From the sequence record OQ708376.1: a stretch of 64,000 nucleotides of DNA. The stretch is one strand, 5' to 3'. The notes under the pieces are model-generated. The model had not been told where the DNA came from, searched no databases, and saw only the letters and a program-made list of their open reading frames with translations. The position numbers were made by a program, and so were the translations under genes. Shown in pieces: positions 25,665 through 61,192 of this stretch (position 1 is the first letter of the stretch; each line of letters begins with the position of its first letter).

Positions 25665-26093
25665 ATGAATATCGAACAAACTATCCGTGAACATTCTTTC
25701 TTCGCTCCAGAAACTGGTCGTGTTATTGAGAGCGTCAAAATCGAAGAACTAATGGTCAATGTTAAATACAAAGAACCAAATGATGAGATTAGCAGTACTT
25801 TTTGTGCTCTACGTGCACCATTCCGTAATGAAAAAGCTAAGAAACCAGCATATGTTCTTGCCATTGCACTGGGTTGTGTTGTAAAACTTGCAGTTGATGA
25901 AAATCTTCTGAATATTAAAGTTGCACCAAGCAATGACGATGAAAACATTGATTTGAACTTTGATGGTTCTCTTGATGAAGATGTATTTTTCCAACAGTCA
26001 CTTGTTTACGACTTCCGTACAGTGACACATTCTCACATCAAGTTCATTAATGAAATGGTTGAGATTGTTGCTGAATACGAAGAATCTCTCTAA
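25665..26093 (+). CDS. EExxFQ-family protein
   Basis: LDEDVFFQQSLVYDF. Confidence 0.75.
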   Translation: MNIEQTIREHSFFAPETGRVIESVKIEELMVNVKYKEPNDEISSTFCALRAPFRNEKAKKPAYVLAIALGCVVKLAVDENLLNIKVAPSNDDENIDLNFDGSLDEDVFFQQSLVYDFRTVTHSHIKFINEMVEIVAEYEESL

Positions 26094-26101
26094 GTAAATA
26101 C

Positions 26102-26126
26102 AAAAGCCTCCATTATGGAGGCTTTT
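26102..26126 (+). terminator. bidirectional-type terminator
   Basis: AAAAGCCTCCA-TTA-TGGAGGCTTTT. Confidence 0.75.
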
Positions 26127-26146
26127 ATCACATAAGGAAATGAAAT

Positions 26147-26698
26147 ATGATAGACCAAATTAAAATCCTTACAAAGCAAATCACTGATTTTCTTTCTGAT
26201 AAAGATGGATTTAATACAGAAGTAAAAATGCACGGTGTTAGTGTTGATGTAATTGCACCAAATGGTAATGTAACAAGTTACGACATGTATGAATTACTTC
26301 TTTATACTCTAGCAGTACGTAAACTAGGTAGTGATATTGAACTCAATATCAATACTGATGAAAGTGGGAATAAAATTTTTGCAATCAACACCAGTGCTAA
26401 ATTCGATATCAGTACTGAAATTAAAAAAATAAATGAAAGTTTTATTGGCTTTAAGCATGAATCAATTCAAAGTGTTTTTATTGGAAAGCAAACTTCTAAT
26501 AGTGAATGCCCATATTGTGTAATGACTTTATATAAAGATGGAAACTGGATGCGTCAAGATTTAGTATTTGCTGAACTTCTGTATGCATTTACACATGAAC
26601 TTAAAATCGAATTGGACGATAGTGTTTATTGCTTTAAGAAAATTCGAAATATAACTAAAGATATACAAACCCAACTTAAAGAATTAAATGATAAATAA
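26147..26698 (+). CDS. hypothetical protein
   Basis: TAAGGA RBS. Confidence 0.75.
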   Translation: MIDQIKILTKQITDFLSDKDGFNTEVKMHGVSVDVIAPNGNVTSYDMYELLLYTLAVRKLGSDIELNINTDESGNKIFAINTSAKFDISTEIKKINESFIGFKHESIQSVFIGKQTSNSECPYCVMTLYKDGNWMRQDLVFAELLYAFTHELKIELDDSVYCFKKIRNITKDIQTQLKELNDK

Positions 26699-26702
26699 AT
26701 AT

Positions 26703-26837
26703 ACCAGAAATGGTTAACATATCATGTTACTTTCCTCCCTTACATAATAATGATGCGTTATTATATTTTCATTTTGTTCTTATTCCCCTTTTGGTACAAA
26801 ATCATTTTAGTACTGCCCCGATCTTCGGGGCATTTTT
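26703..26837 (+). ncRNA. candidate small RNA with C-rich anti-SD-like segments
   Basis: ATAAATA at 26691; hairpins flank TTCCTCCCTT and TTCCCCTTTT; ends in terminator TGCCCCG-ATCTT-CGGGGCA-TTTTT. Confidence 0.4.
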
Positions 26838-26858
26838 CTTATCTAAAATTGAGGATAT

Positions 26859-27254
26859 ATGAAGAACAATATTGGAACTTCAATAATTAAACCACTTTCT
26901 TATTACCTTGAAAAATTTAGAAGCACAAATGGTAATAAATTTAATAATATATTTCAGTTCTCTCATAAAGAATATATTACAATTGATCATTTTTCAAAGA
27001 AACTAATGTATGTAAATGATAATAGTCATATTATTAAATTATCATTCGATATTGAGTTAGATAAATTAACATTTACGGAATACATTAATCAAAAAACTTC
27101 TTTTTTATGTCAATACAATAGGAAAGTATATAGTAATATTTCTATGTATCTAAATGATGAATATCACTTTCAACAATCTACAATAGAAGAAGTATTGTTC
27201 AGTACTGAAGAATTAAAAGAACTATATTACTGGTATAATTATTTCACATCTTGA
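26859..27254 (+). CDS. EExxFQ-family protein
   Basis: NDEYHFQQSTIEE. Confidence 0.75.
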   Translation: MKNNIGTSIIKPLSYYLEKFRSTNGNKFNNIFQFSHKEYITIDHFSKKLMYVNDNSHIIKLSFDIELDKLTFTEYINQKTSFLCQYNRKVYSNISMYLNDEYHFQQSTIEEVLFSTEELKELYYWYNYFTS

Positions 27255-27279
27255 CATTATTGTGGGTTTATCCTACAAT
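27251..27279 (+). promoter_or_regulatory. sigma70 promoter
   Basis: TTGACA-17-TACAAT. Confidence 0.8.
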
Positions 27280-27309
27280 ACATGATGATGCTGCATTGAG
27301 GATAAATTT

Positions 27310-27720
27310 ATGAGTTTAGATTTACACAATGAACTAAAATATTTTTTAGATTTGGACATATCAGAATTGAACCACCACGTCAATCATATGACTAGTACTG
27401 TATGGTGGTCTAATGATCAAGACGACCCAATTATCCAACTAAGTGATGAATCGTCAATTATGCGATTTTATAAGATTAATTATAAAAAGAACATCAAGAT
27501 CACATATGTACCATACAAAAACATACTACTAGTCGAAACACTTAATCCAAGTTCTTTATTAAAAATCACCGATTTAGATACATTACAAACAAGTGAATCT
27601 TTATTCCAACGTTCATTAGTTGATGATCTTGGTGGTATTACTTTTGAAGATATATTACAATTGAAGAATATGTATAGTGAATTGTTGGAGATTAAAAACA
27701 CTTTAGTAATGGGGAATTGA
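27310..27720 (+). CDS. EExxFQ-family protein
   Basis: TSESLFQRSLVDDLGGITFEDI. Confidence 0.75.
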   Translation: MSLDLHNELKYFLDLDISELNHHVNHMTSTVWWSNDQDDPIIQLSDESSIMRFYKINYKKNIKITYVPYKNILLVETLNPSSLLKITDLDTLQTSESLFQRSLVDDLGGITFEDILQLKNMYSELLEIKNTLVMGN

Positions 27721-27721
27721 T

Positions 27722-28126
27722 ATGGTAAGTTTACTAGATATTGATAATACCAGTTTAGTGCTGGTGAAAAAAGGTTTAATTCCAAATTCTAAAAAAATTG
27801 ATTATGCTGTTATTGAAACAAATATTGGAAATATCTGGTACGACTCTGAAAGGGATATTGTGTTTAGCTGTGTAGACAGTGATCGTTCTGAATGTTGTAG
27901 AGTCGGTCATGACGGACAATTTGTTTTTGAATTTCGTTATTGGAAGGACGCAAAATTTCACCAAGAACTGGTTGCTTTGTCAAATGAACTATATACAGAA
28001 GAATCGTTCTTCATGGCTAGTACTATTAATGATTTTGGTTCAGTTACATTTGAGTACTATAAAAAAATATACGCACTATCCAGAGAAGTTATGAAAATTA
28101 TCAGAACTGCTGAAGGTAAAGAATAA
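27722..28126 (+). CDS. EExxFQ-family protein
   Basis: TEESFFMASTINDFGSVTFE. Confidence 0.75.
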   Translation: MVSLLDIDNTSLVLVKKGLIPNSKKIDYAVIETNIGNIWYDSERDIVFSCVDSDRSECCRVGHDGQFVFEFRYWKDAKFHQELVALSNELYTEESFFMASTINDFGSVTFEYYKKIYALSREVMKIIRTAEGKE

Positions 28127-28127
28127 C

Positions 28128-28505
28128 ATGACTACTATATATGATATTTTGGGTGTTCTGAGTAGAAATATAGATGATGATTTTGTTATTGTTCAAGATA
28201 CTAGAAATACATTTCAACTACCAATAGGTTCACCAGATAGGTTAATTTTTAATAGATACTCAAATGAACTAACTTACATCCATGATGGGATTGCAATTGT
28301 ATCAGTTTCTATAAACGACTATACAATACGATATGTATATGACTTCAACGATTATTGTACAAGAATCCACAGTATTGATATTTCCGAAGAGGAACTATTC
28401 CAATTGTCATTGATTGAGAAAAATGTAATAGGAATTACAGAAATTGGTATTATTAAAAAAGCATTAAACTATACAAATATAAGAATTAATGGTGGGTGCA
28501 GATGA
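28128..28505 (+). CDS. EExxFQ-family protein
   Basis: SEEELFQLSLIE. Confidence 0.75.
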   Translation: MTTIYDILGVLSRNIDDDFVIVQDTRNTFQLPIGSPDRLIFNRYSNELTYIHDGIAIVSVSINDYTIRYVYDFNDYCTRIHSIDISEEELFQLSLIEKNVIGITEIGIIKKALNYTNIRINGGCR

Positions 28506-28957
28506 ATGTTGACGAAATAAAAAATCATTTTGAAATTGCAATGTCATGTGAATTTGACACACAACGTGTTCATGACCCGAAAGAACATATACGCATTTGT
28601 TGTGAATTGTCAGATGATTGTAATATTTTTATTGGAAAAACCTATGACATGATCGATCTTTCATGTATAGATCCATTGGAAAGAAAAACAAAATATTTAT
28701 ATCTGTACAACACAACATCAGATACGATTGCAATACAACTAATATCAACCACAACATCCCACAGTTATTATAACATAACTGAGGTTAGTAGTTTAACGTT
28801 AACCGAAGAAGGATTCTTTCAACAATCGCTTATTCGTGAAATTGGTGTTAGTTATGATGAGTTAAATGTATTAGTAGATTGTTTCGAAAAATTGAGTACT
28901 TTTGTATTATCCCTTTTTAATATACAGTCGCAAAATCCAATGGTGGTGAAATGCTAA
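28496..28957 (+). CDS. EExxFQ-family protein
   Basis: TEEGFFQQSLIREIGVSYDEL. Confidence 0.75.
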   Translation: MQMNVDEIKNHFEIAMSCEFDTQRVHDPKEHIRICCELSDDCNIFIGKTYDMIDLSCIDPLERKTKYLYLYNTTSDTIAIQLISTTTSHSYYNITEVSSLTLTEEGFFQQSLIREIGVSYDELNVLVDCFEKLSTFVLSLFNIQSQNPMVVKC

Positions 28958-29391
28958 ATCCAAGTAAATTTCTCCACTTACTTTCGATAACATCAATACC
29001 GGATCTTACCAGTGAAACTAATGAATATCGTGAAGCTGGGGTGGTGTCTATGGAACTCGATACATTTGACCACAAATGCTATGTGACATATGACCCACCG
29101 CGTTATGGTAAAGAACATTCTTCTTTTATTTTTGTATTCGTATACACTGTATATGATAATACAACACTTGATGATGTTTGTATTGACACTTACGAAATTT
29201 GTGATAATATCATAACTGATGACAACAATAACTCATTTGATATGTCACTATATAACACAGAAGAATCGTTGTTTCAACTTAGTACTGTTATTGATGCACC
29301 ATCATTAGAAGATATAAAACAATTTCAAGAACATCTTGACGCAGTTCGTGAGATGTTCTATAATCATTATCCAGAAGTAGAGTTCAATTAA
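28951..29391 (+). CDS. EExxFQ-family protein
   Basis: TEESLFQLSTVID. Confidence 0.75.
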   Translation: MLNPSKFLHLLSITSIPDLTSETNEYREAGVVSMELDTFDHKCYVTYDPPRYGKEHSSFIFVFVYTVYDNTTLDDVCIDTYEICDNIITDDNNNSFDMSLYNTEESLFQLSTVIDAPSLEDIKQFQEHLDAVREMFYNHYPEVEFN

Positions 29392-30048: not shown

Positions 30049-30909
30049 ATGAAACCTATCCGAGTACTTTCTCTTTTTAATGGAATGAGTGTGGGATATA
30101 TGGCATTGCAAGATGCTGGTATCCCAGTTGAAAAATATTATTCATCCGAAATTGACAAGTACGCAATAGCTGAATCTCAAGCTAACTTTCCTGATATTAT
30201 CCAATTGGGTGATGTAACTAAGTGGAGAGAATGGGATATTGAGTGGGATAAAATAGATTTATTAATGGGTGGTTTCCCATGTCAAGCCTGGTCAGTTGCA
30301 GGTAAACAGGGTGGTTTAAATGATATACGTGGGCAGTTATTTTTAGTAATGGTTGAAATTTTTGATCATATCAAAAGTCTCAATCCTAACTTGAAATTTC
30401 TGTTTGAAAATGTTAAAATGAAGGAAGATTTCAAAGAATACATTAATAGTATTTTAGGAATCACGCCAGTACTGATAAACTCCCAGCATTATACGCCTCA
30501 CTTCAGGCAGAGATATTACTGGTACAGTACTGATAAGCTTTTTATACCACCTGCATTATCCAATGCACCTAAACTTCAAGATATTATTGAAGATGGTTGG
30601 TACACTGACAGAACCGCTTCGTACTGTATAGATGCTAACTATTTTAAAGGTGGTGATTGTAACCAGTACTTTAATAAATCCAGACGACAATTGGTGTTTC
30701 GTGACCCAGTGATCAGTCGTCAATATCTATTAGAGAATGGCAAAAGAAATATTGACTATAGACACTTAAGTGTAGTAGAATGTTGTAAATTACAGGGTGT
30801 TCCTGAAGATTTCTTTAAAGTGTCTAGTAAGACACAAGCATACAAAATGCTTGGGAATGGATGGACTATGCCAGTTATATCACATTTACTAAGAGAGATA
30901 TTCTTTTGA
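30049..30909 (+). CDS. DNA (cytosine-5)-methyltransferase
   Basis: VLSLFNG (I), GGFPCQ (IV), FENV (VI), RQRYYW (VIII), KMLGNGW (X). Confidence 0.93.
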   Translation: MKPIRVLSLFNGMSVGYMALQDAGIPVEKYYSSEIDKYAIAESQANFPDIIQLGDVTKWREWDIEWDKIDLLMGGFPCQAWSVAGKQGGLNDIRGQLFLVMVEIFDHIKSLNPNLKFLFENVKMKEDFKEYINSILGITPVLINSQHYTPHFRQRYYWYSTDKLFIPPALSNAPKLQDIIEDGWYTDRTASYCIDANYFKGGDCNQYFNKSRRQLVFRDPVISRQYLLENGKRNIDYRHLSVVECCKLQGVPEDFFKVSSKTQAYKMLGNGWTMPVISHLLREIFF

Positions 30910-31433: not shown

Positions 31434-31949
31434 ATGCCAATTCCTTATGTTAAAATTATTAATAATATTCTCGATTCATGGGAAGATGTTATTACTGGTA
31501 AAAAGCAACCATCACCAGTACATGCTTTATCTGGGAAACTTCAATTCAGAATGTCAAACCAAACTGAAACATTTAATAATCATGATATTTGCATTACATT
31601 AAAAACACCTATTAGTATTGTAATTAAAAAAAATAAAGATGATGAATTGACATTATCTATTGGTCGTGATAAAATCATTTTAAGTAATTTGTCTGAAGAA
31701 GAATTCTTTCAAAGAAGTACTATTATCGATATGAAAGATTTCACATATGAATCATTGGTTGAACTCAATACACGTTTTAACGATATTCAGGAACGATTGC
31801 GACCAATTCTTCGTATCGAAGAAGAAGCCTGGATTGAAAGTATTAGGAAGATGCAAGAAATGTTGAAAGAAAATATTAACAATCTGGGTAAAGCTACAAT
31901 GGAATTTGGTAAAACTTTTAAACTGAACTTTTCAAAGGATCGTAAATGA
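31434..31949 (+). CDS. EExxFQ-family protein
   Basis: SEEEFFQRSTIID. Confidence 0.75.
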   Translation: MPIPYVKIINNILDSWEDVITGKKQPSPVHALSGKLQFRMSNQTETFNNHDICITLKTPISIVIKKNKDDELTLSIGRDKIILSNLSEEEFFQRSTIIDMKDFTYESLVELNTRFNDIQERLRPILRIEEEAWIESIRKMQEMLKENINNLGKATMEFGKTFKLNFSKDRK

Positions 31950-32401
31950 AAATTGATAATTTGATTCATGTTTTAGGATCTTTACATAAAATATTATCAC
32001 ATCTACATGAGATAAAGAAACTGGGATATAACATCTCAAATTCAATTGAAACTACATTTAAATATCAATCAATTACTGGTGATGGTTATTACATAATCGA
32101 ATATACCTATGAAACCGATCCAGACTTCTATCCTCTTACGTTGAGAATTTATCCAACAAATCCGAGAGGAATTCACGACATATCATCAATTTCACTTGAT
32201 CCAGATGGTGAAACGAGTATTGAATACAATAATGATTCAAAACCAGAATTTTACATTGATGATATTAAAATGATGTTCAACGATGAATATGTGTTCCAGC
32301 AAAGTACTGTGCATGATGTTGGAAGTACTAATGGACAATTTTGGAATACATGTTATTATCATATGATTGAAATTTGTAAATTACTAAAAGGCGATGATTA
32401 A
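31946..32401 (+). CDS. EExxFQ-family protein
   Basis: NDEYVFQQSTVHDVG. Confidence 0.75.
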   Translation: MKIDNLIHVLGSLHKILSHLHEIKKLGYNISNSIETTFKYQSITGDGYYIIEYTYETDPDFYPLTLRIYPTNPRGIHDISSISLDPDGETSIEYNNDSKPEFYIDDIKMMFNDEYVFQQSTVHDVGSTNGQFWNTCYYHMIEICKLLKGDD

Positions 32402-32784
32402 TGAAATACAGCATTGAAGTACATTATACTACAGGGGACACTGAAAATTGTTATGACGTTCTTAATACAATTGATATTCAATGGTCTTCTAAAGAGGAAG
32501 CAGTTGCTGCTTTACAGTGCCTAAAAGAGCATTGGGTGTTTTATATGAAGCAAGATAATTGCTATACTAAAGAACACGAAACTATCGTTGAAAATGCTAA
32601 ACAAAAAGAGTGGTTTGACCCAATATCACCAGAATATTCATTCTTGGTTAAAGTTGGCGATGTGACAGTTCCATTACGAACACCGTGGAACGGCTACTTT
32701 GAAACTCTTCATAATGCACGAGTTGTCGCTGTTGATAATCCTGAGCAAATCGATTTCGATTCATTGGACTGGAAAAAACTATGA
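32401..32784 (+). CDS. hypothetical protein
   Basis: TAATG coupling. Confidence 0.75.
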   Translation: MKYSIEVHYTTGDTENCYDVLNTIDIQWSSKEEAVAALQCLKEHWVFYMKQDNCYTKEHETIVENAKQKEWFDPISPEYSFLVKVGDVTVPLRTPWNGYFETLHNARVVAVDNPEQIDFDSLDWKKL

Positions 32785-33224
32785 CAGTACTGCACCAATT
32801 GAAGAAGGTTAAGCATCCAGTTGTATACGAGGATTGGAAACGACAGAAGTTGATGGGTGATTTTTATTTCCCAAAATCTAAAGTTCTTGCGAATTCAAGA
32901 TGTACATATGTCACACATAATGATAAAGATACAGTATTTGTTGAAATGGGTTTCAATCCATCAAATACAATGTTCAGTACTAACCAGACATTTTACAAAT
33001 TTCATATCCAAAAAGATTCATTTTCTATCATGATTTTAAAACTTTTAGTTGAAGATCTGCTATACCGTGGTGAACGTGTTCCTTTATCATTAGTGGATAT
33101 TCCTTATGATAATTTAGAGGAAATGTACTTCCAACAGTTGACAGTACAAGAAAACTTTGGTATGATAGGACTTCAAGAGTTAGAGATGATTAAGCAAATT
33201 CGTGATATCTACTTTAAGGAGTAA
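32781..33224 (+). CDS. EExxFQ-family protein
   Basis: LEEMYFQQLTVQENFG. Confidence 0.75.
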   Translation: MTVLHQLKKVKHPVVYEDWKRQKLMGDFYFPKSKVLANSRCTYVTHNDKDTVFVEMGFNPSNTMFSTNQTFYKFHIQKDSFSIMILKLLVEDLLYRGERVPLSLVDIPYDNLEEMYFQQLTVQENFGMIGLQELEMIKQIRDIYFKE

Positions 33225-37606: not shown

Positions 37607-37999
37607 ATGACTGAATCTGAACTACGTGAAATGATAGATTTCATTTATGAAATGGTACAAGATAAAAATAACATCAATACAATTGCATCTGGTCCAAGAC
37701 AAATTGGTAACCAAATAACATATTCTTTGTCCTTATGGTTACACCCGTGCATTAAGGTTGATTGTTTGTATTTCCGTCCTGATATTGATGCTTATTATTT
37801 TGTCAATCATGATGCATTAATGAAACCACATAATCGTCCAGTTGATGATAACTTTGTGACGCACCCATTTTACCTTGCTGATTCCGAAGAGGATGAGTTT
37901 CAAAAGAACACAACGTTAAGCCCAGGTGAAATTTGCATCCCTTACACACTAAAAGATAAAATGATTTACATCACAGAAGTTATGAAAACATGCTGGTAA
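37607..37999 (+). CDS. EExxFQ-family protein
   Basis: SEEDEFQKNTTL. Confidence 0.7.
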   Translation: MTESELREMIDFIYEMVQDKNNINTIASGPRQIGNQITYSLSLWLHPCIKVDCLYFRPDIDAYYFVNHDALMKPHNRPVDDNFVTHPFYLADSEEDEFQKNTTLSPGEICIPYTLKDKMIYITEVMKTCW

Positions 38000-38617: not shown

Positions 38618-39106
38618 ATGCCGATTCGTGGTGTCCCAGAACCATTAATGGAAGTTATTAAGCATGTTCGCATTGGAGATCGAGAAGTTAATCTTCGCCG
38701 TAATAACATTTATTACTTTAAAACTTCAGAAATGAGTTCTGTGCAGATTGTCATTGGTACATCTATTAAGATTACTCGTGTACTTGATGGTAGTACTGAC
38801 TTCGTTGAATATAATGTACTTACTAATAAAGTAACGCATATATATAAATGGAGTGGGTATAAAACTATTAAGTATGAATTTGACTTAGCTAGAACTGAAG
38901 AAGAACGATTTATGCTGAGTACTATCAATCCAGCAAACTATCCCGATCTTGATGCATTTTTGCTAATTTTAAAATTGTATAATGAAGCAAATCAGAAAGC
39001 TAAAGAGTATGATAGAATCATGTATGAACGCCGAAAAGAACGTGCACAAAAAAGTTATGATCTGTATGATAGCCCATACGTGAAATATAGTAAGGGGTCG
39101 AAATGA
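38618..39106 (+). CDS. EExxFQ-family protein
   Basis: TEEERFMLSTIN. Confidence 0.7.
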   Translation: MPIRGVPEPLMEVIKHVRIGDREVNLRRNNIYYFKTSEMSSVQIVIGTSIKITRVLDGSTDFVEYNVLTNKVTHIYKWSGYKTIKYEFDLARTEEERFMLSTINPANYPDLDAFLLILKLYNEANQKAKEYDRIMYERRKERAQKSYDLYDSPYVKYSKGSK

Positions 39107-39507
39107 ATAAAGAAGTTCAAATTATCATAACTCCACCTATACAAAGTCTGGATGTATCCATTAGTGATTTTTTGGAAAAATACTATGAATGGTTTAATGA
39201 AGATTCAGTAATTTATAACCATTCATTACCAGATGGTTTCGTGGAGCTTATCGAATTAAATTCAAAATCACTATACTTCTGTGTTGAATACAATGATTAT
39301 ATGACAGATGAAGCTTATCGCTTTCGTTGTACATTGTATCCGAATTATTTTTCAATAGGTTATAAAGATTACCAGTACTGTACCACTAACTATAGTGTTG
39401 AGGAAGAATTTCAGTACAATTTACTTTATCCTGATTTAGATTATACGATTGCAGTACTGTTGACTAAAATCATGGATTTTTATAAAGATAAATATAATGC
39501 AGCCTAA
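39103..39507 (+). CDS. EExxFQ-family protein
   Basis: SVEEEFQYNLLY. Confidence 0.7.
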   Translation: MNKEVQIIITPPIQSLDVSISDFLEKYYEWFNEDSVIYNHSLPDGFVELIELNSKSLYFCVEYNDYMTDEAYRFRCTLYPNYFSIGYKDYQYCTTNYSVEEEFQYNLLYPDLDYTIAVLLTKIMDFYKDKYNAA

Positions 39508-40118: not shown

Positions 40119-40454
<336 letters not shown>

Positions 40455-40455
40455 A

Positions 40456-40638
40456 ATGACACACGAAGAATGGATGTCCAAACAGCATAAAGAACATGAC
40501 TGCTTTGGGAATGGCATTCGTCAGGTACATTATGATATATTAAGAGATGAAAATCTTTTCAGGTCATATGTTTTGGATACCAGAAAACCCTGGTTTATAT
40601 GCGAACTGGCATTTAGAAAGTCAAATAATCAAAACTAA
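40456..40638 (+). CDS. MTHEEW-family small protein
   Basis: MTHEEWM...FGNGIRQVHYDIL...WFICELAFR. Confidence 0.7.
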   Translation: MTHEEWMSKQHKEHDCFGNGIRQVHYDILRDENLFRSYVLDTRKPWFICELAFRKSNNQN

Positions 40639-40654
40639 ACAAGGAATACAAAAA

Positions 40655-40873
40655 ATGGAAACAACTTTATTAGAAGTTATTCAATCATTAAAACCTGAAG
40701 ATGAGGTTCAAGTACTACTACATGGTTATCGTGTAAAAGGTACTGTGGTTTTAGTCAATGATACAACATTGGTTATTACAGAAACAAACCCATATGATAG
40801 TAATCAACTTGCCAATATCCATATCGATATCACTGGAATTATTGGTGTCGGTGTATCTAAAACACTTGCATAA
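40655..40873 (+). CDS. small protein, possible Sm/Hfq-like fold
   Basis: AAGGA RBS; helix then VQVLLHGYRVKGTVVLVNDTTLVI...IHIDITGIIGV. Confidence 0.6.
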   Translation: METTLLEVIQSLKPEDEVQVLLHGYRVKGTVVLVNDTTLVITETNPYDSNQLANIHIDITGIIGVGVSKTLA

Positions 40874-40906
40874 ATCATTAATTCATTATATAATGGGACA
40901 TAACAT

Positions 40907-41022
<116 letters not shown>

Positions 41023-41026
41023 AATA

Positions 41027-41103
41027 CGGGGTATAGCACAATTGGATAGTGCAAGAGAATTCTAATCTCTAGGTTGGGGGTTCAAGTCCCTCTACCTCGG
41101 CCA
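41027..41103 (+). tRNA. tRNA-Arg(UCU)
   Basis: CGGGGTA/TACCTCG, AGAGA-ATTCTAA-TCTCT, CCA; A32 is atypical. Confidence 0.88.
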
Positions 41104-41126
41104 ATTTTAATTAAAGGTTAAAAACC

Positions 41127-41453
<327 letters not shown>

Positions 41454-41461
41454 AAAAAAAG

Positions 41462-42066
<605 letters not shown>

Positions 42067-42069
42067 TAC

Positions 42070-42229
<160 letters not shown>

Positions 42230-42244
42230 CAATGCGAGGTATAA

Positions 42245-42502
<258 letters not shown>

Positions 42503-42510
42503 GAATTTAA

Positions 42511-42912
42511 ATGAAAAAGAATGACTTGATCAAAATGCTTCAAGAAATTGACGGCAATCCAGAGATTGTTATTTGGAATGGATACGTCGATGATTATATG
42601 AACATCGAAAAAGGCTTGACTAAAATCACTCTAGTCAAAGAAACCGAACAGTTTCTTCAGGGTGCATTAGAGCACGAATGGTGTGAACGTAACAATACAT
42701 TCGACATTCCAGAAGACCAACGAACCAAGATTGCAGAACGTGCTAAAGAACTGCATAAGAAACGCGAATACGATTTCCAGAACCCATATGTCACTGAAGA
42801 CGAATTCAATCGCTGGTACGGTAAAAAGAAATTGACAAAGTATGTCCTTTCACCTAAACTACGTGGTAAGACTTCACTTGGTGTATTCAACGCCGCAGAC
42901 TTAAACTACTAG
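42511..42912 (+). CDS. hypothetical protein
   Basis: AGGA RBS. Confidence 0.75.
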   Translation: MKKNDLIKMLQEIDGNPEIVIWNGYVDDYMNIEKGLTKITLVKETEQFLQGALEHEWCERNNTFDIPEDQRTKIAERAKELHKKREYDFQNPYVTEDEFNRWYGKKKLTKYVLSPKLRGKTSLGVFNAADLNY

Positions 42913-42921
42913 CGGGTATTA

Positions 42922-43471
<550 letters not shown>

Positions 43472-43531
43472 TACAACCGACAATGACGAAAGAACAGTTA
43501 TCAACATTTATCAACGCAGCATTAGATAAAA

Positions 43532-43563
<32 letters not shown>

Positions 43564-43615
43564 TACCAAGCAGCTTGAAGAACTTTGTAGTGCTGCACCT
43601 ATGCCGACTCTTGGC

Positions 43616-43725
<110 letters not shown>

Positions 43726-43728
43726 TCT

Positions 43729-43818
<90 letters not shown>

Positions 43819-43824: not shown

Positions 43825-44250
43825 ATGACATACAACATTGTTAAAATGGTGAACTATGTATTAAAAAACAACGCATGGTCACTGCATGATGTACAATTAG
43901 AAGATATTGGTGAAGTTAGAGTATTTTGCTATGATCCAGATTTGAATCAAACCACAGATTTGAGTAAATGTTTTAATATTTTTCTTGGTTATGAATTCAA
44001 TAATCATTTTTATTCATTTGATGTGTATTTTGAAAAAGTTATATTCAGAAGTTATGAATGTGATAATGAAGATTATGATTATGATGATGAATCAATTGAA
44101 TTGAATGTTAACGATATTGATACTGAAGAAAAATTCTTCCAGTACTGCCTCCTTAACGACACATTAGGATTAACATTTGAGGACATTAAAGCTATACTTA
44201 AAGTTCAAAAGTTGATTCCAGAAGAGGTACTAAATCCATTAAATGACTAG
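43825..44250 (+). CDS. EExxFQ-family protein
   Basis: TEEKFFQYCLLNDTLGLTFEDI. Confidence 0.75.
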   Translation: MTYNIVKMVNYVLKNNAWSLHDVQLEDIGEVRVFCYDPDLNQTTDLSKCFNIFLGYEFNNHFYSFDVYFEKVIFRSYECDNEDYDYDDESIELNVNDIDTEEKFFQYCLLNDTLGLTFEDIKAILKVQKLIPEEVLNPLND

Positions 44251-44608
44251 TCTAATAGTACGTATAATGCAAGATGTTTGTAATAACCTTTATACAGGCA
44301 ATTTTGACGATCCGAACATAAAAATATTATGTTATGATGGTTTTACAATGGTACATCCATCCTATTCAAATAATATCTACGTAGCATATACAGGTGAAAA
44401 TCTATTGTATCAATTTGATATATATAGTACAATGACAAAGATAATTTTGGATGCCTCTAAACCAGCAATCTTTATTGCTTCTCATGATTACCATTACACT
44501 GAAGAATCACTATTTCAGTACTCAATGATTAATGACATTGGTGGGTTGACATTGGATGAGGTTAATGCTATACTAGCTGTCTCACGTTTGGTTAAAACCC
44601 ACAATTAG
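44243..44608 (+). CDS. EExxFQ-family protein
   Basis: TEESLFQYSMINDIGGLTLDEV. Confidence 0.75.
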   Translation: MTSLIVRIMQDVCNNLYTGNFDDPNIKILCYDGFTMVHPSYSNNIYVAYTGENLLYQFDIYSTMTKIILDASKPAIFIASHDYHYTEESLFQYSMINDIGGLTLDEVNAILAVSRLVKTHN

Positions 44609-45318: not shown

Positions 45319-45747
45319 GTGAATGCAATGAGTTATTTGTTTACTTTAATTGATAAGTATGTTGACATTGTATACCGTCAAGTTTGTAGTGATACGTTTG
45401 AAACAAAAAACCCAATTAGAGATGGCATTTTTGATGTTGTCGTTGGATCATTTTTGAATGGATACACCGAGACATTATACAACAGTAATAATATTTTTAT
45501 TTCAGTTCAATCCAGACATACATCAGACTATGCTGTTAGCATTGATATTTGGGAAAATAATATAGAAATAGATATAACGGAACATACTAACATTCATGTT
45601 GATGATACATTTAATCAATTAACTGAAGAAATGTACTTGCAGTTGAATTTTGTACATAATCTTACAAATATCAGTTATGATACATTAAGGAAAATATGTT
45701 TTCTTAGTGGGGTGATCCGTAGTAATATGAGTAAGGATGGGAAGTGA
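45319..45747 (+). CDS. EExxFQ-family protein
   Basis: TEEMYLQLNFVHNL. Confidence 0.7.
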   Translation: MNAMSYLFTLIDKYVDIVYRQVCSDTFETKNPIRDGIFDVVVGSFLNGYTETLYNSNNIFISVQSRHTSDYAVSIDIWENNIEIDITEHTNIHVDDTFNQLTEEMYLQLNFVHNLTNISYDTLRKICFLSGVIRSNMSKDGK

Positions 45748-46165
45748 AATGTTAAAAATTCCACCTAAGTCGTTAACACATCTTATTGAATGTGGTGTAA
45801 TATTTTCCGAAGGTGATACCTCATCATACACATTGGTCGATGAGCCTTATAATTTTTCATACCAATCTTATAAAAATAATTCTAAAATTTCTTGTAGATA
45901 TGCTGAAAACATATTAATAGATGTTTCGTTACATAATGTTCCGAAATTTTACATTGATATCTTTGGTGATTCTTTGACAATTCGAACATATGATTATTTT
46001 ATTAATAAAGACCTCTTGAGTCTTCCAATTGAACATGATACTATAGATTCAGAGATGTTCTTTCAACTATCAACAGTTTACGATTTACAGGGTTTAACTG
46101 TTGAGCAGTTGAATGGAATATTTGAGATTTCACGAAACATACGAAGCAGGAATAAAAATGTCTAA
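45737..46165 (+). CDS. EExxFQ-family protein
   Basis: DSEMFFQLSTVYDLQGLTVEQL. Confidence 0.75.
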   Translation: MGSEMLKIPPKSLTHLIECGVIFSEGDTSSYTLVDEPYNFSYQSYKNNSKISCRYAENILIDVSLHNVPKFYIDIFGDSLTIRTYDYFINKDLLSLPIEHDTIDSEMFFQLSTVYDLQGLTVEQLNGIFEISRNIRSRNKNV

Positions 46166-46568
46166 TATTTTAAATGAAAAAACAGTTGATGTTGTTATTG
46201 GTGTTCTTAACACCGCAACTTCATTTCAGAAGAAACACAGTGTTGTATACTTTGGTGAAGATTGTTGGCTGAACTATACTAATAATTCGTTTATAATTCG
46301 TGTAGAGGCTGATGATATTGGATTAACCGTTCAGGTAGGATGTGCCAAAACTGACAAACAAATCACTGTCATTGTTGATAAACTTACGTCTTCTTTTTAT
46401 GATAGTATAGATGATTGTGAACACTATAGTTCAACATTTTATGATACAGAAGAAGAACATTTTATGGAAAGTACTGTTCAAGAGTTAGCTATTCCATATA
46501 AGCTAATGAAAGCAGTGAGTGATTTAATTTTAAAATATAAAAAAATAGGAGTTACTAATGCAATTTAA
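46158..46568 (+). CDS. EExxFQ-family protein
   Basis: TEEEHFMESTVQEL; start at ATG 46158 after AGGA. Confidence 0.75.
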   Translation: MSNILNEKTVDVVIGVLNTATSFQKKHSVVYFGEDCWLNYTNNSFIIRVEADDIGLTVQVGCAKTDKQITVIVDKLTSSFYDSIDDCEHYSSTFYDTEEEHFMESTVQELAIPYKLMKAVSDLILKYKKIGVTNAI

Positions 46569-49137: not shown

Positions 49138-50292
49138 TTATGCGTTGTAACCAACTATTACGACTGAGCAGTCAAGCGGTTCTACTACTTTAAGAATTAC
49201 ATTATCATCTTCATCCACTTGTATTTCACTATGAACTACATGATTGTCTGAAGAATATAATTGAACTTGTGGTAGTGCTTTACCATGTTCAGTTACTGGA
49301 ACTGAGATAGAGTACATAGAGTCTTCACCGAGAACCCACTCACTTAAAGTATATTCTTTATGGAAAGGAGTAGTATGCAGTGTTTTTCCGATTATACTCA
49401 AAGAAACAGGTAAATTATCAGTTTGATACACAGTAATATTACCTTCTGCGTCTACAGAAAGATCTACACCAACTTGATATAAGTCACCACTGTATGCTTG
49501 AAGTGCTAAGTACTGTCCACGATCATGAACATCAAATGGAACAACCGCAGAAAATACACCTTCCGAAACAGGTTCAAATTGGGATAGAAGAACTGATGTA
49601 ACAAAATCAATATCCTCACCACTTTCAAGAACATCAAATTCCACCACTTTAGTGTTATAATATGGAGAAGTGAGCGTAGCAGTACCTTTCCCTGATTGTG
49701 TGATAACATCAACTGGAATTGTAAATGCATCATTAACAAATTGGGTAGTAAAGTATTCTGTCCCGTCTGGTAATACGATTGTTATTACCATACCGTTAGT
49801 ATCAATTTCTGAACCAGTGTTGAATAATTTACCACTAATTGAGTCATTACCAACAAATACTGGTGAAATGAGAATATTATCTATATCACGATCTATAATA
49901 CCACATTCAGGTGTATACATATGATACAAGGTTTGTGAACTACCTAAAATTGTTTTATGTAGCATAAATTTATATACAAATCCAGTATCAGTTTCTTGTG
50001 GCTCTTCAGAATATCCACGAACAAAGAAACAATTTTTATTAATTTCACTTAATAGTTGGTCATTAGTTTTATTGTAATTTAATAGATAACCTTTATTATC
50101 TTTAGTTGTTATTTGTACTTTACGATATATTATATTAGTTCTTGGATCAACTAAATCATATAATCTATGGCTTCTTTGGCGATAGATTCTAATATTTTTT
50201 AGTCTAGTTCCATCGTTGAGGATTGCACCATCAACAACATAACCACATTCACCAAACTTATAGCGTCCAGCCGCAGCAATTGACCTTGACAT
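49138..50292 (-). CDS. putative virion/tail-fibre-associated protein (Ig-like domain plus two C-terminal repeats)
   Basis: GGAGGGA RBS and ATAAATA late motif (50324-50330) on -; repeats S.VP..H...Q.YS...VD..(G/D)N. Confidence 0.75.
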   Translation of the reverse strand: MSRSIAAAGRYKFGECGYVVDGAILNDGTRLKNIRIYRQRSHRLYDLVDPRTNIIYRKVQITTKDNKGYLLNYNKTNDQLLSEINKNCFFVRGYSEEPQETDTGFVYKFMLHKTILGSSQTLYHMYTPECGIIDRDIDNILISPVFVGNDSISGKLFNTGSEIDTNGMVITIVLPDGTEYFTTQFVNDAFTIPVDVITQSGKGTATLTSPYYNTKVVEFDVLESGEDIDFVTSVLLSQFEPVSEGVFSAVVPFDVHDRGQYLALQAYSGDLYQVGVDLSVDAEGNITVYQTDNLPVSLSIIGKTLHTTPFHKEYTLSEWVLGEDSMYSISVPVTEHGKALPQVQLYSSDNHVVHSEIQVDEDDNVILKVVEPLDCSVVIVGYNA

Positions 50293-55088: not shown

Positions 55089-56054
55089 GTGAAAAAGCTT
55101 GATTTAAATACAATTGCCGAAGAAGTTCTGGATGAATGTTTTTCTAATGAAGAAGTCAACACACTAGAAGCCTTAGATTTCGTTGAAGATAAAGATGAAA
55201 ATGAAGGTAAAGTACAAAGCAGTTTCAAATATAATATTACACTTAAGCGACCACCAAATGTTTCCAATGAAGATCTAATTCGTGATATTCAAGCTGGTAT
55301 CAATGTAAAGAAAAACACTGAACTGTTAGTTCGTTACAATTATGGACTTATTATTGATGTAGCAAGTAAATGTACTTGTTATATCCCATTTGAAGATAAG
55401 ATTTCATATGGTGTTGAGGGGTTCATGAGAGCACTAAAAACCTTTGATCTTAATAAGAATGTGAAGTTCATTACCTATGCTTCTTCTAGTATTTACATGA
55501 CAGTTTATAACGAAAGTTCTGACGCTAACTATATGGTACACTTCCCACGTTATATGAGTGTTCATAAGATCAAAGTAAAAAGATTCTGTCAGGAATATAT
55601 GCGTAAACATGGTGTTCGCCCAACTCCTGAAATAATCTCAGAGGGTACTGGGATTGAGATTCAGCATGTTAATAACTGTTTGTTATTTCAAAGCGAATAC
55701 ACTTCTCTGGATGCACCATTAGACGGTGTTACCGATGGTACACTAGGTGACATTATTCATTCACCTGCTTCTGATTTTAACCTCAATGTTGATAGTATTC
55801 GTGCACCTTTACGTTATGCTATCAATGAACTGACTAACGAATTGAGTACTAAAGAACGTGAGATTATCCAGCGTGTTCATGGTCTAGGTGAATATGAACC
55901 TGAAACGCTTCGTGAGATTGCTGATAATGGTTTTGTTGATGATAATGGAAAATATGTTAAATCCCGTTCATCAATACACCGAAAGTACAGTGAAGCTATG
56001 CAAAAGCTTAAGAAGTTAGTACTTGCAAAAGGGTACGAATACGAAGATTTCTAA
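55089..56054 (+). CDS. RNA polymerase sigma70-family factor (regions 2-4)
   Basis: LLVRYNYGLI..VA, FEDKISYGVEGF.RA.KTFD...KFITYA, RPTPEII, SLDAPL, LSTKEREII..HGL...TLREIA; GTG start after AGGAG. Confidence 0.9.
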   Translation: MKKLDLNTIAEEVLDECFSNEEVNTLEALDFVEDKDENEGKVQSSFKYNITLKRPPNVSNEDLIRDIQAGINVKKNTELLVRYNYGLIIDVASKCTCYIPFEDKISYGVEGFMRALKTFDLNKNVKFITYASSSIYMTVYNESSDANYMVHFPRYMSVHKIKVKRFCQEYMRKHGVRPTPEIISEGTGIEIQHVNNCLLFQSEYTSLDAPLDGVTDGTLGDIIHSPASDFNLNVDSIRAPLRYAINELTNELSTKEREIIQRVHGLGEYEPETLREIADNGFVDDNGKYVKSRSSIHRKYSEAMQKLKKLVLAKGYEYEDF

Positions 56055-57947: not shown

Positions 57948-58130
57948 ATGCAAATTATCATTCTTATCGTTGGCATCATGCTGGGTGTTTACGGTCACTC
58001 CTGGATGAACGAGAAGTTTCCTAATACGCGTCCTGAGTATTGCAGTTCTAATGTATTCCAGAATGGTGAGAAACCAAAGGAAAGCATTGGTAAAAAGCTG
58101 GATAAAGTACTTGATGTGATCAATGAATAA
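57948..58130 (+). CDS. small membrane/secreted protein
   Basis: GAGGA RBS; N-terminal TM. Confidence 0.7.
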   Translation: MQIIILIVGIMLGVYGHSWMNEKFPNTRPEYCSSNVFQNGEKPKESIGKKLDKVLDVINE

Positions 58131-58341: not shown

Positions 58342-58350
58342 GGATACAAC

Positions 58351-58434
58351 ATGACTTTAGAGATTGTCTTTGGTATTGTTAGCTTAGTCGTCTGTGTGGG
58401 TTGGTTTGGGTATCTGATGATTTTTAGTGATTAA
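58351..58434 (+). CDS. hydrophobic micro-ORF (27 aa)
   Basis: TAAGGA RBS; MTLEIVFGIVSLVVCVGWFGYLMIFSD. Confidence 0.5.
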   Translation: MTLEIVFGIVSLVVCVGWFGYLMIFSD

Positions 58435-58437
58435 TAC

Positions 58438-58465
58438 TTGACATAAGATATCAGTACTGTATAAT
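58438..58465 (+). promoter_or_regulatory. promoter with CAGTACTG abutting the -10, 16-bp spacer
   Basis: TTGACA-TAAGATATCAGTACTG-TATAAT. Confidence 0.75.
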
Positions 58466-58510
58466 GTTTATATCAAACGAAATCCACTTTAACAAATGAT
58501 AGGAAATATT

Positions 58511-58789
58511 ATGTCTTTTTCTAAAGAAGAACGTGACCTTATTAAAAAAGCAATCTGGTTTTATGCTAATGAAGGGAAGTGCGATGAAGAAAAAGCACGT
58601 GAACTGTGTAATATCTTTGAGAAGAAACAAGATCTAAAAGTGTATCGTATCCGTGATTTGGATGAAGGGGATCGTATTGTCCTAGCTGAAACAAAAGAAG
58701 AAGCAGAACAAATCTTCACTGATAAAAACGAAAATCCACATTGGATGGAAGAAGTCTGTGATGTTAAAAAAGGTACTTATATCGATTGA
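58511..58789 (+). CDS. hypothetical protein
   Basis: AGGA then ATG 58511. Confidence 0.7.
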   Translation: MSFSKEERDLIKKAIWFYANEGKCDEEKARELCNIFEKKQDLKVYRIRDLDEGDRIVLAETKEEAEQIFTDKNENPHWMEEVCDVKKGTYID

Positions 58790-58884
58790 CAGTACTGAAT
58801 AATAGCAGTATTATGTTTTATATAAAAGGGAATGCAGTGAAAGGAAAGACAGCATAATCGTACTCGTCACTGCGTTCCCGCCCT
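58786..58884 (+). promoter_or_regulatory. sigma70 promoter followed by a 13-bp leader hairpin
   Basis: TTGACA-17-TATTAT; GGGAATGCAGTGA/TCACTGCGTTCCC then GCCCTTTT. Confidence 0.65.
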
Positions 58885-58908
58885 TTTAAATTAAATGAGG
58901 AATTAACT

Positions 58909-59217
58909 ATGTTTCAAACTAACACTCAAGGTTTTGTAATCATCGATTTGAATCAAAACAGCGGTCATTGGATGAAACCTACTGACGCATGTATGCAGTT
59001 TGATTTCTTAGGTTACAAAATTAGTGTAAGTACTGGTGCTTCTGTACTGAGAGGTGGTTGTATCGTTGAACATCTGGTAACTGATCCAGAAGGTCGTGAG
59101 TATGAAATCGCAGGTTCAGTACAAGATGCCATTATGTTTGTATGTCAGCGTGAAATGAATGGTTCGAATTCAAATGCACTGACTCATGCTCTTTCTCAAG
59201 AAGTGGAGGTTCGTTAA
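58909..59217 (+). CDS. hypothetical protein
   Basis: GAGGA RBS. Confidence 0.75.
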   Translation: MFQTNTQGFVIIDLNQNSGHWMKPTDACMQFDFLGYKISVSTGASVLRGGCIVEHLVTDPEGREYEIAGSVQDAIMFVCQREMNGSNSNALTHALSQEVEVR

Positions 59218-59462
59218 TGAAATACATTGTAGCAGTACTCGTCGCATTTCTACTCACTGCATGTGATGCTTCTACCAAAGAACGTACAAGTGATTTTGTT
59301 CTACCTGCTGAATTAAAAGAAGCAGGGTGTAAGATTTATCGTATGCAACAAGATGGTGCTGGTGCGACTTTATACACTGTGTACTGTCCTAATGCAAATA
59401 CAAGTACTGGATACACTAGCGGTAAAACACGAATCAACACTTCCGTAATTCATGGAGAATAA
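59217..59462 (+). CDS. putative lipoprotein
   Basis: lipobox LTAC after a hydrophobic signal. Confidence 0.75.
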   Translation: MKYIVAVLVAFLLTACDASTKERTSDFVLPAELKEAGCKIYRMQQDGAGATLYTVYCPNANTSTGYTSGKTRINTSVIHGE

Positions 59463-59464
59463 CA

Positions 59465-59833
59465 ATGAGCCTTGATACAACACGTGCAGCAGATTTATTA
59501 ACTCGTCTGAATGATGAAGAATATCTTGCTGAGATAAAGTACAAGCTTGACAAACTTGTTCGAAGTGCTGAAGTAATTGAAGTTGAAGGTCACTTACCGA
59601 TGGATCAATACCATAGGTTCAAGGAAGATATGGTTTATTATCCTAATGAAATTTGGATTGAGTGGCAACATTGGACTAACAAAACTCTTCGCATTGAAGG
59701 GTATTGTGTGAAGTATGAAAGTTCACCTGGTGATGTTACAAAAACTCTATCAATTTGGTGTACAAAAACAAATGAACTCGTTGAGGTGAATTTGAATTAT
59801 ATGAATGGATTCCGTTGGGGTGATGTTAAATGA
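59465..59833 (+). CDS. hypothetical protein
   Basis: GGAG RBS. Confidence 0.7.
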   Translation: MSLDTTRAADLLTRLNDEEYLAEIKYKLDKLVRSAEVIEVEGHLPMDQYHRFKEDMVYYPNEIWIEWQHWTNKTLRIEGYCVKYESSPGDVTKTLSIWCTKTNELVEVNLNYMNGFRWGDVK

Positions 59834-60105
59834 TTAAAAAACTCTTGACTGGAATCATTGTGTGCAGTACAATGTTTCTTACAGCATGTAATGATGACGG
59901 CAGGTTTAGTGCAAAAGACTTAGTTCGTCAGGATTGTACATTCACAGGTAAGTCTTTTATTAACGAGTATGAAATATGTACACAATCAGGTCGTATCTGT
60001 GGTGGTTGGGAAAAACGTCAGGAGCGATTGTATGTATATGAATGCCCTGGACATCACAACAAAGTACTAAGCACACACAAACTTGTTTATGATAAGGTTG
60101 AATAA
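59830..60105 (+). CDS. putative lipoprotein
   Basis: lipobox LTAC; additional Cys residues. Confidence 0.75.
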   Translation: MIKKLLTGIIVCSTMFLTACNDDGRFSAKDLVRQDCTFTGKSFINEYEICTQSGRICGGWEKRQERLYVYECPGHHNKVLSTHKLVYDKVE

Positions 60106-60320
60106 TGACTACCAATGAAATGATGCAGGTTATTTGGGATAAAGGTTGTGATATTAAAATCACTAGTACTGATGTTCGTGTATTCAAAACTGAATATATG
60201 GAGTACTTGGACCTTGATACTTATAATAATATTGTATCAATTGAACACAAAGGTGCAGTACTGGAAACCATTGACGTAGTACTCAAGAAAGCTACCGACC
60301 TATTAGGAGTGGCAGTGTGA
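60105..60320 (+). CDS. hypothetical protein
   Basis: TAATG coupling. Confidence 0.7.
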   Translation: MTTNEMMQVIWDKGCDIKITSTDVRVFKTEYMEYLDLDTYNNIVSIEHKGAVLETIDVVLKKATDLLGVAV

Positions 60321-60463
60321 ATAACAAAGAGTGGGAAGATTACCGCAAGAAGTGCAGGGAGTTTGATAAAGAACTTACTGGTACAGTGAATGCAGTAATG
60401 TGGGTATCTGTAATTATTGCAGTTCTTGCGTTGGGTGCTATTATTATTAATAAATTATTCTAA
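60317..60463 (+). CDS. small C-terminally anchored membrane protein (48 aa)
   Basis: AGGAG, GTGA coupling. Confidence 0.55.
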   Translation: MNNKEWEDYRKKCREFDKELTGTVNAVMWVSVIIAVLALGAIIINKLF

Positions 60464-60473
60464 GGCGAATATC

Positions 60474-60674
60474 ATGTTTACTTTATATCTCGCAGTAGTT
60501 CTCACCAATGGTGAAATCACTCGTACTATTGGTGAAGGTGTATATAAAACACCAGACCAGTGCTACTCTGCCACTCATTGGCCTCGCGATAGTGGGGATG
60601 AAACTCGCACTGAATTCAAATGCATGAAAGTAAAAGGTGATTTTGTTAACCTTAAGGTTATCGAGGCGAAATAA
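60474..60674 (+). CDS. small exported-type protein with two Cys
   Basis: MFTLYLAVVLTNG...TPDQC...FKCM. Confidence 0.65.
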   Translation: MFTLYLAVVLTNGEITRTIGEGVYKTPDQCYSATHWPRDSGDETRTEFKCMKVKGDFVNLKVIEAK

Positions 60675-61192
60675 TGGATATTAATGAGTTGTTGAAATTA
60701 GTGTTTAATCGTGAACGCCGCGATACAAGACCAATTGAATATCAAGATGTGATACGCATTGAAACTGATTTCTGTTATGGTAAAACAACTCATGACCTTT
60801 TGAATCTCTCTGGAAAACGCTATGCTGATGTTTGTTTTTCAGAGAGAAGTGATGGTTCAGAAATAACGAGTACTGATATTGTTTGTTACGCACGCAGTGC
60901 TGATAAATCTTATGAAATAGAACTTATATATTCCCCTAGTTCTAAAACAAATCATCACCGCCATATTTTATATGATGTTTACACACCACCTGGTATTGCT
61001 GAATATTTTGTTATTGATTATAGTACTGAAGAAAATGTGTTTCAACAAAGTTTGATTCATAACTTTGAGGTGAATGATCCATTAGTACCAAAGTTGTTCA
61101 AACTACTTGACACCATCGATGTTGATTTTGAATTTGTTATGTGCATTAGAACTTCTTTATTCAATGAATTCATGGAACTTTTTAATATATGA
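60674..61192 (+). CDS. EExxFQ-family protein
   Basis: STEENVFQQSLIHNF. Confidence 0.75.
   Translation: MDINELLKLVFNRERRDTRPIEYQDVIRIETDFCYGKTTHDLLNLSGKRYADVCFSERSDGSEITSTDIVCYARSADKSYEIELIYSPSSKTNHHRHILYDVYTPPGIAEYFVIDYSTEENVFQQSLIHNFEVNDPLVPKLFKLLDTIDVDFEFVMCIRTSLFNEFMELFNI

Follow-up and report, generated by a model that had tools for sequence, protein, structure and literature searches.

A many-copy family of small, mostly acidic proteins sharing a C-terminal sequence module in Asteriusvirus jumbo phages

What unites some twenty neighboring phage genes whose products end in variants of the motif (T/S)EExxFQxS(T/L)(V/I) and yet begin with parts that look unrelated to each other? The question is posed by a stretch of 64,000 nucleotides (nt) from the 366 kb genome of Escherichia phage vB_EcoM_CRJP21 (OQ708376.1), an Asteriusvirus akin to PBECO4, 121Q and RaK2. 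The whole of this stretch is hereinafter termed the window (its base 1 is base 248001 of the record), and genes are named by the window position at which they start. A preliminary description of the window had read the shared motif as a constant tag that docks on one common partner and is mounted on unrelated domains. We instead lean, with slightly more than even confidence, towards a lineage-specific expansion of one small early intracellular α/β protein family, the copies of which bind different host proteins.

The membership of the family is clear-cut for most of the genes. A hidden Markov model (HMM) of the module, built from the C-terminal 40-55 residues of the members, matches 20 open reading frames (ORFs) at expectation values (E) of 7e-10 or lower, while the best value among the remaining 330 ORFs of the window (six frames, at least 40 amino acids, aa) is 0.23. 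A wider HMM of 182 modules recovers the same 20, and iteration with relatives together with a six-frame scan of stop-to-stop segments found no further member or remnant in the window. Thus, from a list of 21 proposed carriers, the 20 firmly named ones translate as claimed and have their motif confirmed by the HMM; the last, 22642, which had been credited with a weak version of the motif, has no match at E ≤ 10 to either HMM. Leave-one-out searches recover 17 of the 20 at E < 1e-3, the others being 32781, 37607 and 39103; of these, 37607 and 39103 are divergent, marginal members that we count on the basis of their motif, size, position and array context. The members are 117-172 aa long with the motif starting at residue 84-119, and most of them fall into tandem runs (27310-29391, 31434-33224, 38618-39507, 43825-44608 and 45319-46568). 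The individual genes, with their leave-one-out E-values and isoelectric points (pI) where these help to characterize them, are as follows:

25665..26093 (+), member, 142 aa; module at 25956-26090; leave-one-out E 2e-4; orthologues 65-91% identical
26859..27254 (+), member, 131 aa; leave-one-out E 1e-6
27310..27720 (+), member, 136 aa; opens a six-gene run downstream of a promoter-like site at 27251; leave-one-out E 3e-8
27722..28126 (+), member, 134 aa; leave-one-out E 4e-12; full-length orthologue with 30% identity in Klebsiella phages RaK2 and K64-1
28128..28505 (+), member, 125 aa; leave-one-out E 4e-4
28496..28957 (+), member, 153 aa from GTG; relatives annotated from ATG 28502 (151 aa); leave-one-out E 2e-8
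28951..29391 (+), member, 146 aa; pI 4.1, the most acidic together with 43825
31434..31949 (+), member, 171 aa, with a long C-terminal tail; longest ORF from TTG 31407; leave-one-out E 7e-7
31946..32401 (+), member, 151 aa; leave-one-out E 1e-5
32781..33224 (+), member, 147 aa; leave-one-out E 0.02
37607..37999 (+), divergent marginal member, 130 aa; leave-one-out E 0.26; motif kept in the Turkey5 orthologue
38618..39106 (+), member, 162 aa, with a long tail; the sole basic one, pI 9.2; leave-one-out E 6e-5
39103..39507 (+), divergent marginal member, 134 aa; leave-one-out E 0.36
41522..41875 (+), member, 117 aa; flanked by tRNA genes and downstream of a promoter-like site at 41463; leave-one-out E 2e-7
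43825..44250 (+), member, 141 aa; closest paralogue of 44243
44243..44608 (+), member, 121 aa; modeled with AlphaFold
45319..45747 (+), member, 142 aa from GTG; start probably ATG 45328 (139 aa, like relatives); N-terminus joined to 44243 and 45737 by jackhmmer
45737..46165 (+), member, 142 aa; leave-one-out E 3e-10
46158..46568 (+), member, 136 aa; upstream ATG 46113 as an alternative start would give 151 aa
60674..61192 (+), member, 172 aa; away from the arrays; leave-one-out E 6e-6
22642..23223 (+), non-member, a conserved ORF of 193 aa with no Pfam match

The tail that follows the module in 38618 is long and rich in Lys, Arg and Glu. The neighboring genes 32401, 46558, 47016 and 47432 were considered as decayed members and rejected, each being a distinct conserved protein.

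The module itself sits at a uniform position. From the start of the motif to the C-terminus there are 31-53 residues in 18 of the 20 ORFs (68 and 83 in the other two), in keeping with the 30-50 aa given earlier as the usual distance. Residue counts were made on one representative from each of the 116 clusters into which BLAST groups the N-terminal parts of 258 members from all sources; column 1 is the first residue of the motif:

Column 1: Thr 70, Ser 30, Asn 8 (of 116)
Column 2: Glu 109 (of 116)
Column 3: Glu 112 (of 116)
Column 4: Glu 61 (of 116)
Column 5: Phe 38, Tyr 38, Leu 18 (of 116)
Column 6: Phe 115 (of 116)
Column 7: Gln 104, Met 12 (of 116)
Column 8: variable
Column 9: Ser 106 (of 116)
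Column 10: Thr 70, Leu 44 (of 116)
Column 11: Val 57, Ile 38, Leu 16 (of 116)
Column 13: Asp 73, Asn 18, Glu 16 (of 116)

Beyond column 13 there is a loop and then a helix with hydrophobic positions every 3-4 residues. The same counts agree with the previously noticed trailing pattern, with Asp at +12, Gly at +14, Thr at +17 and Glu at +19 followed by an amphipathic helix. The columns fit helix capping and packing, with Thr, Ser or Asn in the first position, a near-constant Phe, and a β-branched or hydrophobic residue after the Ser.

Is this module a tag, or a piece of a larger domain? A profile search of 1.84e9 representative proteins retrieved 131 clusters at E ≤ 1e-3, making the family larger than first claimed. 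The proteins of these clusters have a median length of 138 aa (interquartile range 129-147); the medians are 95 for the residue at which the module begins and 6 for the number of residues behind it. The ten longest members show no Pfam domain. Searches with the N-terminal parts found none that occurs without the module, three apparent exceptions proving to be orthologues. AlphaFold run on an alignment of 36 sequences pooling eight N-terminal groups gave a model of 44243 as a single compact domain with a predicted local distance difference test score (pLDDT) of 89.6 and a predicted template modeling score (pTM) of 0.84. Its elements are a helix at 4-15, strands at 26-32, 44-51, 54-61, 64-68 and 76-79, the motif helix at 87-96 and a further helix at 104-114. 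The motif thus forms an internal helix packed with the sheet in this model, and no low-confidence linker precedes it. In a Foldseek search of BFVD the model matches other family members, mostly near full length and with template modeling (TM) scores of 0.4-0.76; these come from phage UB, Pectobacterium CBB, Yersinia fHe-Yen9-04, Cronobacter GAP32, Klebsiella RaK2, Erwinia pEa_SNUABM_47 and PBECO4. An attempt on 28951 with its seven close orthologues alone was unusable (pLDDT 39). The rise in model confidence once the paralogues were pooled (pLDDT 39 to 90) is evidence that their N-termini are alignable. Hence, the C-terminal "tag" looks like a part of the fold, at least in the modeled subgroup. 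The structure prediction that had been suggested as a check accordingly returned one shared full-length fold for the 44243 subgroup, the attempt on 28951 having failed, and the notion of a constant tag on unrelated domains is not supported in view of this compact model, the uniform size and position over 131 clusters, the strict co-occurrence of the N-terminal parts with the module and the lack of any known fused domain. We consider it likely that a full-length fold is common to all canonical members.

The docking idea survives in a modified form, wherein an invariant hairpin would bind one common partner in the infected cell, either a single phage protein or a host machine (for instance a chaperone, a protease, the ribosome or RNA polymerase), while the variable part recruits or blocks targets. 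Several polar residues (the two Glu, Gln and Ser of columns 2, 3, 7 and 9, and to a lesser degree the Asp of column 13) are near-invariant in otherwise unalignable proteins, about 50 copies are kept in each genome with each under purifying selection, and the module is conserved across genera, all of which counts in favor of such a partner. Nevertheless, the motif helix is built into a compact domain rather than carried on a linker-separated tag, the Gln is replaced in 12 clusters by Met, which is better suited to packing than to specific hydrogen bonding, and the sizes are uniform with no fusions found; a virion scaffold as the partner is further disfavored by the proteomics of phAPEC6 discussed below. 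On balance we regard this arrangement as rather unlikely, and doubt still more its stricter version, in which some 50 adaptors per genome plug into a single host machine (protease, RNA polymerase or ribosome), each bringing or blocking a different host protein. If true, docking on a single machine would amount to a phage adaptor library with a logic like that of the substrate-receptor families of eukaryotic viruses, executed with a fold that has no solved relative. The same conserved residues could alternatively be read as the catalytic or metal-binding site (Glu-Glu, Gln, Ser and Asp) of small enzymes whose variable part sets the choice of substrate, and the grouping of conserved acidic and polar residues on one helix suits that idea. 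We judge it very improbable: no enzyme family or solved structure is matched, the conserved residues are confined to one helix and a second conserved element is lacking, the motif tolerates Gln/Met and Thr/Leu exchanges, and fifty paralogues that are each a 15 kDa enzyme would be out of the ordinary.

The N-terminal parts are where the members part company. Pairwise BLAST of the N-termini of the members detects nothing beyond 43825/44243 (E 0.006). With jackhmmer, run on true sequences alongside reversed, shuffled and non-family decoys, 43825, 44243, 45319 and 45737 are linked with zero decoy matches, and the remaining members stay isolated. The earlier impression of unrelated-looking N-termini is therefore accurate at the sequence level, by BLAST and profile-profile comparison alike, with only those four joined by jackhmmer. 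When an N-terminal HMM derived from the pooled alignment was applied to 103 N-terminal clusters that it had not seen, their scores exceeded those of the controls by a small but significant margin (p 0.012 for reversed, 1e-5 for shuffled and 8e-15 for non-family sequences).

The family extends well beyond the window. In the unannotated phage EC22.5-2, which shares 97.5% identity with the window at 25-47 kb, 53 of 1290 ORFs carry the module at E < 0.01, all on one strand. Of these, 21 fall in the stretch equivalent to the window, 27 make up a second cluster (57-85 kb) and five stand alone (26.7, 98, 139 and 152 kb). The second cluster corresponds to about 26-43 kb of the CRJP21 record, outside the window, and holds more divergent members with longer tails. 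At about 50 copies per genome the family makes up nearly one tenth of all genes (551 are counted in phAPEC6; PMC7247149). For RaK2, nearly 10% of the proteins were reported by its authors to be paralogues (PMC3622015), and a 50 kb stretch of a RaK2-like Klebsiella phage contains 13 members of the present family. Further afield, 107 of the 131 clusters are not close to the Asteriusvirus genes compared, and the distant representatives P0073 and P0092 have no match among 50,697 phage records. Five tandem copies of a near-identical pattern are seen at 68.1-70.4 kb in the second cluster of EC22.5-2.

Within the genus, bases 25000-47000 of the window, which match CRJP21 at 100%, are 96-99% identical to the Asteriusvirus phages G17, Sharanji, JP4, PBECO4 and phAPEC6, and each paralogue of the window is represented by a single syntenic orthologue in UE-S1, TH47 and Turkey5. 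The ratio of nonsynonymous to synonymous substitution rates (dN/dS), with 30 pairs of orthologues pooled, comes to 0.25 for the N-terminal part and 0.19 for the module, both being constrained, and the mean identity of orthologues is 64% and 73%, respectively; the CMSTMSU record (L001), which is marked unverified and has several orthologues fragmented, was left out of these counts and of the conservation counts. One-to-one syntenic orthologues across the genus combined with purifying selection on both halves imply that the copies are specialized and not redundant. The duplications are old rather than recent amplifications. Copy number does vary locally: in the run after tRNA-Thr, Turkey5 (L002, 22142-24718) has six or seven members as compared to three in the window, with three extra copies, and one additional copy is found near tRNAs in phAPEC6 and EC22.5-2. 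At 41976-42225 the window has tRNA-Ser, tRNA-Met and tRNA-Asn, where phAPEC6 (gp092c) and EC22.5-2 have instead an extra family member of 127 aa; JP4 and UE-S1 have an HNH endonuclease near the equivalent of this site, which is a variable hot-spot.

Two further properties of the family are its acidity and its promoter context. The pI is below 5 in 16 of the 20 members, with net charges of -6 to -21, and its median is 4.7, the 44 other ORFs in the 100-200 aa range having a median of 6.0 (p 2e-4); a pI below 5 is seen in 80% and 20%, respectively. The plus strand has 31 sites that agree with the sigma-70 consensus in at least 11 of 12 positions and the minus strand has 2, against about 3.4 per strand expected by chance, bearing out the earlier placement of the arrays behind such promoters; 11 of the plus-strand sites are perfect 12 of 12 matches. 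Three that precede members are:

27251..27279 (+), sigma-70 consensus-like promoter, 11 of 12; upstream of the 27310-29391 run
41463..41490 (+), sigma-70 consensus-like promoter, 11 of 12; upstream of 41522
43415..43442 (+), perfect sigma-70 consensus promoter, 12 of 12; upstream of tRNA-Thr and the 43825-44608 pair

By these sequence signals the entire window looks like a block transcribed by the host polymerase, and the equivalent promoter-rich region of CBB has been proposed to hold early host take-over genes (PMC5259590).

The products are also absent from virions in a close relative. The phAPEC6 equivalents of window 25-47 kb are gp082c-gp136c, and those of the second cluster lie within gp405c-gp470c. 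Could the module target its bearers to the capsid interior, from which they would leave with the DNA on ejection? Other jumbo phages are known to have paralogous families of head proteins, which counts in favor of such packaged cargo. A capsid inner body is likewise present in phAPEC6 (PMC7247149). The 62 proteins of the phAPEC6 virion proteome (PMC7247149, Table 1), however, include none from either gene range, and the genes stand behind sigma-70 consensus promoters, outside the structural gene blocks. We hence reject packaged cargo, on the virion proteomics, as extremely improbable; the same result disfavors the phage scaffold that had been offered as a docking partner.

The genes around the arrays offer some further context. 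The window has a G+C content of 29-38%, and its plus strand carries nearly all the genes. Apart from two Pfam matches, to a methylase and a sigma factor, the remaining ORFs of the region have no Pfam match:

40141-43808, seven tRNA genes
30049-30909, C5 cytosine DNA methylase (Pfam match), inside the family array
55089-56054, phage-encoded sigma-70-family protein with regions 2, 3 and 4 (Pfam match), within the same early-looking block

This setting invites the alternative that the proteins serve the program of the phage itself, with many specialized copies acting as regulators of transcription or replication or as assembly chaperones. In its favor, the early-looking region adjoins the phage sigma factor and tRNA genes, and the proteins are intracellular and not found in virions. 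We hold this to be improbable, given that no DNA-binding or other known domain was detected, that most members are strongly acidic, which is unusual for nucleic-acid binders, and that the copy number differs between related phages in a manner more typical of accessory genes.

Among the other genes, the methylase locus of UE-S1 (L003, 5729-7609) is annotated with a far longer methyltransferase gene (1881 nt as compared to 861 nt), and the sole long minus-strand ORF of the region, at 49138-50292 (384 aa), is without a Pfam match. In deposited annotations, a NADAR-domain protein and a peptidyl-tRNA hydrolase stand beside the arrays in Turkey5 (L002, 135-617) and beside the 27722 orthologue in K64-1 and Muenster. 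These neighbors fit a take-over or counter-defense region.

Returning to the expansion of one host-directed family, we posit the following scheme. The members would be small phage proteins of about 15 kDa that are mostly acidic and stay inside the cell, and the host RNA polymerase probably transcribes their genes early from the consensus sigma-70 promoters. Each is predicted, from the model of one subgroup, to be a single α/β domain in which a C-terminal helical hairpin, formed by the motif helix and the amphipathic helix, packs on an N-terminal helix and a sheet of five antiparallel strands. This hairpin would form the unchanging core of the domain and might also serve as a shared contact surface, the sheet and first helix having diverged past sequence recognition. 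The variable face of each copy might then bind a different host protein, the most plausible targets being basic, nucleic-acid-handling or defense proteins, and the proteins could act as stoichiometric inhibitors or modulators, probably in host take-over or counter-defense. An anti-host role for the library of paralogues, as proposed at the outset, is in this respect plausible.

Several observations weigh against this reading. On the structural side, a confident model is available for one member only (44243), and the BFVD TM-scores are modest (0.4-0.5) for distant members. Profile-profile comparison of the N-termini of orthologue groups gives family-family scores with the same distribution as family-control and control-control scores, just three pairs reaching 50-75% probability, and hhalign aligns the module alone for the 25665 and 28951 groups (33 and 32 columns). 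As the N-terminal profiles are overall no better than controls, a shared N-terminal fold is indirect for 12 of the 20 members. Members of the second cluster are also proportioned differently, their motif lying at residue 51-70 or 100-150. Moreover, the near-invariance of Glu in columns 2 and 3 goes beyond the needs of helix capping and could mark a common partner or ligand. On the functional side, the literature searched on this phage group yields no expression data, and low-copy proteins can escape virion proteomics.

Were the single-family reading to hold, about one gene in ten of well-studied jumbo coliphages (PBECO4, 121Q, phAPEC6 and Sharanji) would fall into one family, and its recognition merges the annotations of genes that databases currently list as dozens of unrelated hypothetical proteins. 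Pooling the family also supplies the deep alignment that enabled structure prediction. As a set of early-looking, non-virion, acidic proteins, the members are natural candidates for host take-over or counter-defense functions, and they would provide a clean case of a small fold tolerating near-total sequence turnover around one invariant helix.

The family appears to be previously undescribed. The members have no match in Pfam, none of the 20 matches a PADLOC model at E ≤ 0.1, and the PDB offers neither a sequence match nor a fold match (best Foldseek E 0.05, TM about 0.2). In PHROGs every member in the window matches its own unknown-function phrog over its full length at E 1e-70 to 1e-122 (phrog_24941, 17453, 24510, 24321, 23322, 21500 and about 20 more). 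The same proteins are thus already catalogued there, but split into more than 20 groups that cross-match only via the C-terminal 40-50 residues, with no unifying family or function recorded. The literature searched on PBECO4, 121Q, Sharanji, phAPEC6, RaK2 and CBB, along with a comparative overview of jumbo phages, does not describe the family.

Several known systems invite comparison. DNA-mimic anti-restriction proteins of the Ocr and ArdA type are small, strongly acidic and produced early. The present proteins resemble them in size and acidity, and the dense sigma-70 promoters point to a similar early expression; unlike for those mimics, no relation by PDB fold, PDB sequence or Pfam was found. 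Poxvirus ankyrin proteins with a C-terminal F-box-like domain and docking-peptide adaptors combine a separable tag with a recognizable variable repeat or domain in many copies, whereas here the module is placed by the 44243 model inside one compact domain, and no separable architecture is seen. T4-type internal proteins and phiKZ-type inner-body proteins are small and variable with a short constant element, and are virion components processed by the prohead protease; in contrast, the present family was not detected in phAPEC6 virions. A parallel in genome organization is the "genomic accordion" (PMC7824862, PMC13359090), a lineage-specific expansion of a gene family in large DNA viruses, such as the expansion of a zinc-ribbon to about 35 copies in Bacillus phage G. 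As in such accordions, many tandem paralogues are found in one large viral genome, with a copy number that differs among relatives. The family described here differs from them in belonging to another protein family with another predicted fold, and in consisting of old paralogues that are maintained as one-to-one orthologues under purifying selection.

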